Positions 57,100 to 63,714 of a DNA stretch of 63,915 bases are shown here, piece by piece. The position numbers and the translations under genes were made by a program. A model generated the notes under the pieces. It ran no database searches, was not told where the DNA came from, and saw nothing but the letters and a program-made list of their open reading frames with translations. Numbering within the stretch: position 1 is the stretch's first letter; each line of letters starts with the position of its first letter. The stretch comes from Salpingoeca rosetta (taxonomy: Eukaryota > Protista > Choanoflagellata), in NCBI GenBank assembly GCA_033442325.1, contig JAWQFM010000011.1, positions 684,873 through 748,787 of the forward strand, read 5' to 3'.

Positions 57100-60000
57100 T
57101 CAATTTTCGAGGAGGTGACAGCACTTGGTGATGTTGACCCCTCTGCAGCAGCTGTTGCACAGGTGCACGGGAAACGATGATGCCGTGACAATGAGCCTGT
57201 TGCAGTAGAAGCACGACTGGTTCGTCGTGGGGCCGGGCATATGCAGGCGATAGTCTGCGTGTTGGCGGCATCGATACGCCTGCACAGAGTGAGTGAGTGA
57301 GTGAGTGAGTGAGTGAGTGAGTGAGTGAGTGAGTGAGTGAGTGAGTGAGTGAGTGAGTGAGAGCGAGACCTACACACGCGCACGCACACAAAGACACCAT
57401 TGCGCACGCACGCGCGCAGACAATATCACGCACGCACCGCCTTGACGTTGTATTTGTTCATGGGTTGATCACCGGGCCGCGACATGCTGAAGGGCACACG
57501 GCGGCCGCACATGCCACACGCGTCCTTCTTCGCCAGGCCGTGGCTGATCTGGTGCCCGCACGTCGTGCACATGCGCTCGTGCTGTCGTATTGATCGCGGC
57601 GTGGTGGTGGTGGTGGTGGAGGAGGTGGTGGTGGTGAATGAGGGAGTGCGTGTTGATGTGTGAATTGACGATGTGTGACAAGAGCAACTTATTGATGGCG
57701 TGTGATGAGTGAAACAGTCGTAGTGTGTGTCAAGAGTTGCATGCACATGCATGGGCTCAGGTGCACAAACACGGCACCACAACTGATACCTTTGGCACGC
57801 CATTCATGGCCATGATGGTCACGCCGCACTCGCACTGGCGCGCAAGCTGCAAAGCGGATAGTAAGGGGGGAGGCGGACAAGGAGGACATGTGGCACGTGC
57901 AGGGGGGAAACAAGGAAGAGTTAAGTCGGCGGCGTTTGTGCACACGTATGTGGGAAAGGGCTTGTAGAGTGTGTCGCATGTGCGCGAGCGTGTGGTTGCT
58001 TGTCTGCATGTGTATGTGCGCGCGCGCGCGCGCGCGTGTGTGTGTGTGTGTGTGTACACGTGGGTGTACCGCAGCACAACGTCACAGCACCAGCACCAAC
58101 AGCAGCATCAACACCAACACAAGCAGCAACGCACCTCGGATCCGAGGGAAAACGGCAGGAACTGGGTGGGCATGTTCTTGAGGACGTGGTAGCTCATGGG
58201 TCGTGACTTGAGGAAGACAGACTGGGACGCGCAGATGTGCGTGGAACGGCTGCAGATACGCATTGGTGTTGGTTGATAGGCACGGGTGGCAGGTGTTGTG
58301 GGCGCAACGAGAGGTAGAGGGTGAAAATAGACGTAGTGTGAATATTTATAAGAGAAAATGATTGCACAGACAACTGCGCCGAGTTTGGGTACTCGTCAGG
58401 TGCATAGTGGCAGTCGGTCTCAAGTACAAAGACACATGCGCACACGTGCGAACACACACACACACACACACACACACACACACACACACACACACACACA
58501 CACACACACCACGACACACACACACACACACACACACACACACACACACACACACACACACACGCACGCACACACACACACACACACACACACACACACA
58601 CACACACACACACACACACGCACACGCACGTGCGAGTGCGAACACACGCGTGCGCACACGTTGCACGGCACGGGTCATGTGCCATGCAGCAGTGTACCTG
58701 CCAACGCCTGGGGAGTCCTTGAAATAGTCGAAGAGGGTGTGGCGTGCTGGCGCCAGCACCTGCCCCAAAGCGTATTCGTGCGATGCGTCCTCTGAAATGT
58801 CCATGTCAATGCGTCTGGAATCGGCAATTGCGTTCACCACCGCGCGGCACACGTCCCAGTTCTTGAACTTGATCATGTCGCCCCTGAACACAGCAAACGC
58901 AAAGGAAGAGCATGGTGAGCGTACAAGACGTTCCAGTGCGTGCGTGTTGTGTGTGTGTTGTGTGCGTGTGTGCGTGTGCGTGTGTGTTTCGCGTTATGTG
59001 TTATGTGTTGTGTGTGTGTGTGCGCGCACTAACTTTACGGTGACGAGCGGGCGGATGCGGTCGAGGAGCGTGAGCCAGATGACGGCCGGCATGGCGTCCT
59101 TCACCCTACACGCCCACGGATGCAATGCAGTGAGACAAGATCGGGTCAGAAAGCAGCAGCGCTGTTGCTCACAGTCAAGGCACATTTCCCCTTCACACAC
59201 ACTCCCTCTCTCACACAGACACACACGCACACAAACACACACACACACAATGACGTACTTGTCGCCGTCCTCGTTGATGTTGAGCTGTCCGAGCATTTCC
59301 CGGAATTCAATCTCCCGCAGCGGACCAGCAACAGCGGCTGGCGGTGACAGGCGGGGGGCGTGTGCGTGCGTGTGCGTGCGTGTGTGCGTGAGGGAGTGCG
59401 GGTGTGTGCGTGTGTGTGTGTGCGTGTGCGTGTGTGTGTGTGTGTGTGTGCGAGAGAGAGAGAGAGAGACAGACAGACGGACAGACAGACAGACAGACAG
59501 ACAGACAGACAGGAAGAGAAGTGCGTTTGCACTGATTGTAACCCAGACAAGGCTGCAGTTAACAACGTAACACAGAGAAAACTGGACCGCGAGAGAGAGA
59601 GAGAGAGCCAACGTCAAATAAGCAAAGCAAAGCAAAGCACAGCACAGCACAGCACTCGGGACAGACCGAGCAAGAGGAGGGCGCGCACGAGCTGTCCAGA
59701 GTCGTCCTCCTCCACCACGCGCGCCAGAATCTGCTTGGAGAGATCCGTGATTGTCGGTGGAAGGGAGCGGATGCGCGCTGTCAGCGTCTCGAAGATGCCG
59801 TACACGCGCAGTTCTTCGCATGCGCACCGCAGCCACGACAGGTCCCGCGCGCCGGCGTTGTTCTGGCACAAGCACACGAGAGGTGGTGGTGGTGATGATG
59901 ACGGTGAGATTGTGTATTTGAGGACAAACAGAATCGAGAGTAAAGACAATGTTGGGCACGCACGCACCAGATGCGCGCACACGCACACACGCACACTTAC

Positions 60001-63000: not shown

Positions 63001-63714
63001 ATGTGTGCTCCGTTGCTTGTCAAGCTACCCGTGACAGATGCACCATCACAAACACGCACACACGCACACAGCAGTCACCACACAGTCACAAACAACTACA
63101 CAGCCATTGCCACAGCCACTGCAAAGCGGCGCGCGCACCTCTGGCGATGACTCCTTGGGCACGCCCCAGCGAAGATCGCACGAGACAAGACGCAGCATGC
63201 GCTGCTGGCAGAAAACCTTCAGCCGCGGGAACACCTTGCGCACCAGCACCTCTCGCTCGGCGTACATGTCCGCAAATGTTGACGACACAAACACGCGCAC
63301 CTCCTGCGGTTGCATGGACAGCACGGAGTGGTGGTGGTGGTGGTGATATGGTGGTGGTGGTGGTGAGGAGGAGGAGGAGGAGGAGGAATGCGGGGTGGTT
63401 GTGCGTTGGGGTAAAGGTGATGATGATTCGGTGCGCACGTACACATCAGCATACACAAAACGCATGATGAATGCGAAGGAGCGCGAGGCAGCGAGAAAGA
63501 GAAGACGGTAGAGTGGGTCAATTTTCACATACACACACACACACGACACGCACACACAACACGCACACACACACGCCCCCCCCCCCCCCCCCCCCCCAAA
63601 CAAAATAAACAAGGTTGTTCACCCCCAAAGACACAGAAACACAGCCCCTAAACTCCACTTCGTGGTGTATACATCCAGCTCTTTAGTCGTCCGCTCGTCC
63701 ATCCCATCTGCCAT
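57100..63714 (-). CDS. TEP1/NWD-related STAND protein: DUF4062 + degenerate NACHT + C-terminal Cys-rich (PHF5-like) zinc domain; start codon uncertain
   Basis: EVRVFVSSTFADMYAEREVLVRKVFP..DLRWGV; CLRELERC..FINLLGERYGWVP; SVTHMEV; VIGRDE; Walker B VVMFLDG; FNKTLDHEQMDLI..WLRCACEELRVYGIFETLTARIRSLP; Cys-rich end ..KCCHLLEN*. Confidence 0.85.

Follow-up and report, generated by a model that had tools for sequence, protein, structure and literature searches.

A DUF4062-NACHT-clade gene of Salpingoeca rosetta with a conserved, degenerate nucleotide-binding module

A minus-strand gene in a 63,915-nucleotide stretch of the Salpingoeca rosetta genome (contig JAWQFM010000011.1, positions 684,873 to 748,787 of the forward strand, hereafter the window) appears to encode a STAND protein (one of the signal transduction ATPases that have numerous domains) in which the motifs for nucleotide binding are destroyed. 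The locus raises the question whether such a gene is still maintained by selection and, if so, what its former NTPase module could contribute. The initial annotation described the gene product as similar to proteins of the NLR type (nucleotide binding combined with leucine-rich repeats), with an intact DUF4062 effector and a dead NACHT P-loop. We consider it probable that the gene is a real and selectively maintained member of the DUF4062-NACHT (NWD1/NWD2/TEP1/NPHP3) clade, that its nucleotide-binding domain (NBD) has become a pseudo-NTPase, and that the NACHT-derived and helical part now serves the TIR-like head as a scaffold or regulator that works without nucleotide.

Frame reading and inspection of the exon borders revealed a gene with ten colinear exons, A to J (59656-63315), all with open frames and GT-AG borders, followed by further exons up to a stop near 57100 (Table 1). 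The introns are short and (CA)n-rich, with GTGCGT as a recurrent donor. Motifs of the family are rebuilt across the splice joins: GERYG of exon B is continued by WVPS of exon C, and IHG of exon C by ALRSHNPNAAFF of exon D; at the F-G join, VIGRDEE is followed by VRRVLEYC. All motifs quoted in the initial annotation were recovered on the minus strand within these spliced exons. The gene was searched one exon at a time, and the exons were kept separate in every search.

The clade assignment is carried by the head of the protein. Exon A matched 11gz_A, a crystal-structure chain of the TIR-like domain of human TEP1, with an E value of 3.9e-10. The Pfam DUF4062 model (PF13271) scored 22.7 bits with exon A and 14.6 bits with exon B, each alone under the cut-off of 24.7 for a domain that is split over four exons. 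A family hidden Markov model (HMM) made from an alignment of 33 DUF4062-NACHT proteins (A1) matched exons A, B, C, and D colinearly at positions 7-62, 67-91, 92-124, and 133-171 (70.3, 22.7, 16.3, and 8.5 bits, respectively). Together with BLASTP matches to L019, the closest paralogue in the same genome, these results bear out the proposed identity as a DUF4062 protein of the NWD/TEP1/NPHP3 type. With the numbering of 11gz_A converted to that of TEP1 by an offset of 893 (consistent with R954, R976, and E1008), the catalytic Glu is kept (SVTHMEVIHG opposite SVTElEilHg of the family and SVTEMEV of TEP1, E1008), as is the equivalent of R976 (GERYG). The equivalent of R908 is an Ala (SSTFADM versus SSTFRDM); the paralogues, too, vary at this position. 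DUF4062 was recently reported to be a TIR-like NADase that is activated by clustering and for which E1008 is catalytic in TEP1; the TEP1 variants R908A and R976A had reduced activity, and NADase assays in vitro of the full-length human proteins NWD1, NWD2, and NPHP3 were negative (bioRxiv 10.64898/2026.05.01.722283). Because of the inactivity of these three human proteins, an "intact" effector can only mean that the catalytic residue is present. The earlier description stands for the catalytic Glu and the RYG Arg, but it was too strong for the head as a whole with its Ala in place of R908.

Additional DUF4062 exons, 44-80% identical to exons A-D, were found on another contig, L023. They retain STFADM, RYG, THME (SITHMEILQG), and NPNAAFFLR. 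Compared with the window gene, the proportion of non-synonymous changes was far lower than that of synonymous changes (pN 0.31 versus pS 0.68, the latter being saturated).

The NBD itself differs from the family at nearly every diagnostic position. In alignment A1, G40, G42, K43, S44, and the Walker B Asp D133 are invariant. At the Walker A position the window gene reads AHEDEGRE, with the first Gly replaced by Ala, the Lys by Arg, and the Ser/Thr by Glu; the loop contains three acidic residues. The Walker B strand (VVVMFLDG) retains the invariant Asp, the only one left among the nucleotide-binding motifs of the window gene, and the near-invariant ALNQL that follows it is replaced by GTHSHL. 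The GxP/NPL position is occupied by R-D-L, where L019 has G-N-P and the family consensus has A-N-P. The motif stretches of the window gene read ...VPHLSLLAHEDEGREGVLCLAAL... (61159-61182), ...VVVMFLDGTHSHL..., and ...GARDLSWLRCACEELRVYG...; paralogue L019, a single exon on contig C5, reads ...PAPLVVEGESGSGKSALLANW...LVIVLDALNQLE...GNPLFLTLLIEELIAFG with the Walker A motif GESGSGKS.

The register of this comparison was checked in three ways. Alignment by eye and BLASTP placed AHEDEGRE opposite GESGSGKS of L019. The family HMM located exon F at positions 195-232, exon I at 397-435, and exon J at 442-497, so that exons G and H fill positions 235-390, the interval from the P-loop to Walker B. Finally, hhalign set AHED[ED]GR[ET] opposite GeSGSGKS and FLDG opposite VLDA (P 0.017, 82 columns). 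The IGR motif that precedes the P-loop is present in exon F (VIGRDEE; family consensus YIGR...PLVVLGESGSGKS). Neither [GA]xxxxGK[ST] nor even the tripeptide GK[ST] was found in any minus-strand frame between 56900 and 63700, which rules out a hidden canonical Walker A exon of the gene. The initial claim of a dead Walker A and GxP motif with Walker B remaining thus also holds at the DNA level.

Despite this divergence from the family motifs, several results suggest that exons G and H still form an NTPase-derived fold, the evidence for it being weak but consistent. The helical/winged-helix part (exons I and J) follows the NBD colinearly, as judged by the family HMM and by BLASTP to L019. For the continuous exon that corresponds to G and H in a marine homologue described below, the nearest feature clusters in the ESM Atlas were all of the STAND/AAA type (AAA_22, NB-ARC, NPHP3_N, AAA_16, AAA_35; 0.87-0.92). 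An AlphaFold2 (AF2) model of the same exon, of low confidence (predicted local distance difference test 62), predicted the order helix, strand, loop, helix, strand, helix, helix, strand.

The marine homologue was identified with exon I. A phmmer search against 1.84e9 representative sequences yielded one true match, P0001, an exon-sized open reading frame of 94 residues with 53% identity; five further matches were repeat proteins and were rejected as spurious. The P0001 locus sits on contigs from Tara Oceans and other marine metagenomes in ENA, and the Tara locus was recovered in two independent assemblies from two samples that are 100% identical over 2063 bases. The Tara homologue shares the degenerate motifs, with VVAHEDDGRTG at Walker A, GARTLSWL at GxP, and VIVMFLDG at Walker B. 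Identities between the window gene and the Tara homologue were 61% (exon G), 44% (H), 53% (I), and 77% (J), with ratios of non-synonymous to synonymous substitution rates (dN/dS) of 0.22, 0.80, 0.58, and 0.24, respectively, and of 0.43 over exons G-J together; all are rough values, as dS (~0.8) is near saturation.

The introns lie at different positions in the two species. The Tara homologue has exons G and H joined into one (L024:1546-1884 versus window 60635-61248), and likewise exons K, L, and M (L013:1337-1822 versus window 58664-59311); contig L023 splits exon A before CDLRWG. These differences independently confirm the coding frames, and the P-loop exon is not an intron artefact, since G and H form one continuous exon in the homologue. 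The Tara P-loop exon begins at the same cag/GTGCG border as exon G (the slash marks the exon border). The dead loop is kept in the homologue, dN/dS is below 1, and pN is far below pS in the comparison with L023; the pseudo-P-loop is therefore under constraint. The degenerate motif is maintained by purifying selection in a second species, and decay to a pseudogene is unlikely.

No close paralogue was found in the 55.4 Mb assembly (68 contigs), in which searches with exon G and with exon I returned only the window gene. The paralogues L019, L020, and L021 all have a canonical G....GKS Walker A motif; L019 (G000:C5:1200373-1208000), the closest of the paralogues, is ~30-35% identical in the alignable exons. 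For a further DUF4062-NACHT-WD40 paralogue, L022 (G000:C26:836000-845999), no G....GK[ST] was present in the 10 kb fetched, and both its Walker B motif (VLVIDGVDKLED) and its GNPLFL motif have the canonical form; an intron may interrupt the P-loop of this gene, or the loop may be degenerate as well. A separate cluster of near-identical single-exon genes (L004, L005, L006, and L008 on G000 contigs C23 and C35) gave weak PF13271 matches. Here, a TIR-like N-terminus (MPPHRVFISLRFSEA...) is followed by armadillo-type repeats, and the family is distinct from the NWD type.

Pfam detected no WD40, TPR, or LRR repeats in the C-terminal stop-free segments, and exons K-M also matched no Pfam family. With such repeats lacking and the Pfam NACHT model missing the core, the term "NLR-like" was too loose; strict-sense NLRs (NACHT plus LRR) were reported to be absent from choanoflagellates (PMC3879445). 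The innate-immunity role and the sensor function of the tail put forward in the initial annotation are hypothetical. At the other end, a PH-like exon (QGGSVKSWKRRLFRLDRSLLAY; partial Pfam PH match, E 0.0034) lies ~3 kb upstream on the minus strand (L026:3055-3255, equivalent to window coordinates 66282-66482 and past the window end). It is separated from exon A by an assembly gap of 100 N (L026:689-788) and an acidic low-complexity open frame. The same order of PH and DUF4062 was observed on contig L023, where a PH exon (E 2.6e-4) is located ~700 nt upstream of the DUF4062 exons. The upstream PH exon may thus represent the true N-terminus of the window gene. For this reason, and because the frame is open further upstream, the ATG at 63315 is a tentative start. 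Downstream of the gene, a multi-exon pyruvate dehydrogenase E1 alpha-like gene is encoded on the minus strand (window 53000-55990), and an N run (assembly gap or masked stretch) between (CA)n repeats was noted at about 50690-51190.

Table 1. Exons and motifs of the DUF4062-NACHT-clade gene, in window coordinates. Slashes mark exon borders.
Feature	Position	Strand	Supporting observation
Exon A, DUF4062 (TIR-like) start, MQPQEVRVFVSSTFADMYAERE to DLRWGVPKESSPE	63139..63315	-	FVSSTFADM...ERE and DLRWG; donor GAG/GTGCGC
Exon B, VVFRTCLRELERC...NPFFINLLGERYG, holds the RYG arginine (TEP1 R976)	62850..62941	-	Acceptor tttcag/, donor GG/GTGCGT
Exon C, WVPSKEEVPESIREEYDWVDNTSVTHMEVIHG, SVTHMEV at 62534-62554, Glu codon (TEP1 E1008) at 62537-62539	62527..62621	-	Splice restores GERYG/WVP
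Exon D, ALRSHNPNAAFFLRGFGVIDELPSEFRARF...RRLK, DUF4062 end	62200..62336	-	Acceptor cccccag/GA, donor AAG/GTGCGG
Exon E, linker LHNRYPAEHVREYTAHFKETREIQGIRKAILDGLDQFA	61815..61929	-	Open frame, AG and GT borders; no family match (Pfam, family HMM)
Exon F, linker, ends in pre-P-loop motif VIGRDEE	61473..61621	-	Weak colinear family HMM match, positions 195-232
Exon G, strand, pseudo-P-loop, helix (PHLSLLAHEDEGREGVLCLAALKAREQGMKVIVLK)	61095..61248	-	Acceptor cag/GTGCGT at 61249, donor AAG/gtaaat at 61094
Pseudo-Walker A AHEDEGRE (exon G)	61159-61182	-	In register with GESGSGKS
Exon H, two helices and Walker B strand, VVVMFLDG at 60662-60685	60635..60796	-	hhalign, FLDG opposite VLDA
Exon I, NBD remainder and start of helical domain (GFVDLVKSVGNLHFVMTQDPAG...MSPLSHEASRAIVQVTLGRFNKTLDHEQMDLIV)	60092..60331	-	Family HMM 397-435; colinear BLASTP to L019
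Exon J, helical/winged-helix (NNAGARDLSWLRCACEELRVYGIFETLTARIRSLP...)	59656..59862	-	Family HMM 442-497, 19.4 bits; BLASTP to L019
RDLSWL (exon J), GxP position	59830-59847	-	RDL at 59839-59847 in place of family G/A-N-P
Exons K, L, M, helical region (IEFREMLGQL..., DAMPAVIWLTLLDRIRPLVTVK, GDMIKFKNWDVCRAVV...)	58664..59311 (about 59255-59311, 59030-59100, 58664-58882; borders approximate)	-	Colinear with one Tara exon
Cys/His-rich C-terminal tail and stop	57100..57846	-	Sub-threshold double-zinc-ribbon match, E 0.0037 (Pfam)

The window gene shares with human TEP1, NWD1, NWD2, and NPHP3 the module order of DUF4062, an IGR...P-loop region, a Walker B strand, and a helical/winged-helix part with E-E-L-R-x-F/Y-G, as well as the DUF4062 catalytic Glu and the RYG Arg. 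It differs from them in the destroyed Walker A and GxP motifs, in the Ala at the R908 equivalent, in a short Cys/His-rich tail instead of WD40 or TPR repeats, and in the much smaller size of the protein (about 800 residues, to which an N-terminus with a PH domain may add). The DUF4062-NACHT-WD40 paralogues of the L019 type are 35-39% identical in the DUF4062 exons and colinear in the helical part, but they contain GESGSGKS, VLDALNQLE, GNPLFL, and WD40 repeats, where the window gene has AHEDEGRE, FLDGTHSHL, and RDLSWL. The bacterial DUF4062 defence proteins Swarozyc and Evangelion belong to the same TIR-like NADase family, contain the catalytic Glu, and are activated by assembly (bioRxiv 10.64898/2026.05.01.722283). 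In contrast to the eukaryotic, intron-rich window gene, they have other architectures without a NACHT-derived module of this type.

Several observations weigh against the reading of the gene as a pseudo-NTPase scaffold coupled to a TIR-like head. With E values up to 10 allowed, the Pfam NACHT model (PF05729) matched neither exons G, H, and I nor the fused G+H exon of the Tara homologue; in the exon-by-exon Pfam analysis, DUF4062 was the sole family, with no NACHT, NB-ARC, or AAA match in the window gene or in the Tara exons. The family HMM scored exons G and H below zero, and of the profile comparisons only hhalign aligned them in register. Foldseek returned no significant match for the AF2 model, the best being an IstB AAA+ domain at E 0.065; the P-loop NTPases at the top ranks, at this E value or weaker, are suggestive at most. 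In the Tara locus, 1.5 kb of sequence upstream of the P-loop exon contained neither DUF4062 nor exon-F-like coding sequence, so that the window gene alone is seen to couple DUF4062 to a pseudo-NACHT module. A Ser/Thr-Tyr kinase-like gene, whose last exon has a strong acceptor and a stop, ends ~380 nt upstream of the Tara P-loop exon, and a ten-codon first exon (MVQRGGGRES) could possibly splice in frame to the latter (L024:1-1160 and L024:1440-1560; identical in L025); the Tara homologue may hence exist without a TIR-like head. Synteny with the kinase gene was considered and rejected, as the kinase orthologue in this genome is on another contig (C20), and scans of Joint Genome Institute (JGI) metagenomes for longer contigs of the homologue found none. 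The head of the window gene has Ala at the R908 equivalent, and it may itself be inactive, given that human NWD1, NWD2, and NPHP3 were inactive in vitro. Finally, the loss of ATP binding and hydrolysis is predicted from the motifs only, and the near-saturated dS leaves the estimate of constraint a rough one.

Other explanations of the degenerate loop have to be weighed against these same data. We regard as doubtful a model by analogy with paired plant NLRs, in which the window protein would be a P-loop-independent "sensor" that needs a canonical DUF4062-NACHT-WD40 paralogue as a "helper" to supply nucleotide-driven oligomerization. Several paralogues with an intact GxxGxGKS motif are encoded in the same genome, and the helical/winged-helix part that forms STAND contacts is the best conserved region (exon J, 77% identity). 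Plant sensor NLRs such as RRS1 of the RRS1/RPS4 pair have a degenerate or dispensable P-loop and so provide a precedent for a STAND receptor without a nucleotide switch. Published work has dealt with degenerate P-loops in NLRs (for example, PMC3782705; bioRxiv 10.1101/2025.04.11.646618, for RRS1/RPS4). However, the plant proteins belong to an NB-ARC clade that is unrelated to the NWD-type NACHT, no paralogue or partner gene adjoins the gene within the window, where the neighbor is the pyruvate dehydrogenase E1-alpha gene, and identity to the closest paralogue does not exceed about 30-35% in the alignable exons.

It is improbable that the loop acts as a binding-only switch, with nucleotide or another phosphate ligand bound non-canonically through Gly-Arg in place of Gly-Lys and the Walker B Asp kept. 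The G-R pair is found in both species, in the Tara homologue with a following Thr (GRT), the Walker B Asp is retained, and few exons are as constrained as the P-loop exon (dN/dS 0.22). On the other hand, phosphates would be repelled by the three acidic residues of the loop (HEDE/HEDD), Ala stands in place of the first Gly, the Ser/Thr that coordinates Mg is replaced by Glu in the window gene, and the Pro of the adenine-side GxP motif is Leu. A decaying or non-functional copy, or an exon G that is absent from the mature mRNA, would be compatible with an NBD core that has diverged past profile recognition and with the lack of a close paralogue or of a full-length orthologue (exon I against the 1.84e9 representatives). 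This explanation is very unlikely, as every exon is open and has consensus splice sites, and the homologue of the second species keeps the frame, the exon border, and the motif at a dN/dS below 1.

In the favored scaffold reading, the NACHT-derived and helical part would form a nucleotide-independent oligomerization or regulatory scaffold for the TIR-like head. The head, if active, would cleave NAD+ once clustered, as the TEP1 domain does, and control would come from the Cys/His-rich tail, the probable upstream PH domain, or both, and not from nucleotide exchange. A more specific version, which we consider unlikely, is that the former phosphate pocket is occupied by the conserved acidic pseudo-P-loop AHED[ED]GR, a built-in mimic by which the module is locked in one state; assembly and cleavage of NAD+ would then be triggered directly by a ligand of the tail or by membrane recruitment through the PH domain. 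If this were true, the protein would be a naturally simplified STAND effector, in which the TIR-like head is activated without ATP.

The DUF4062-NACHT family, the NADase activity of DUF4062, and degenerate P-loops in other STAND clades are already known. New in the NWD/TEP1/NPHP3 clade is that a conserved acidic pseudo-P-loop occurs in combination with the preserved catalytic Glu and that a zinc-finger-like tail replaces the repeats. The window gene bears on how the adjacent NACHT ATPase controls DUF4062 in TEP1, NWD1, and NPHP3, as a natural test of whether the head can be regulated without nucleotide exchange, in an organism that is a close relative of animals and for which genetic tools exist. 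Though a single gene, it enlarges the pre-metazoan STAND repertoire by an unusual architecture, in which a possible PH domain, DUF4062, and a pseudo-NACHT module are followed by a zinc-finger-like tail.

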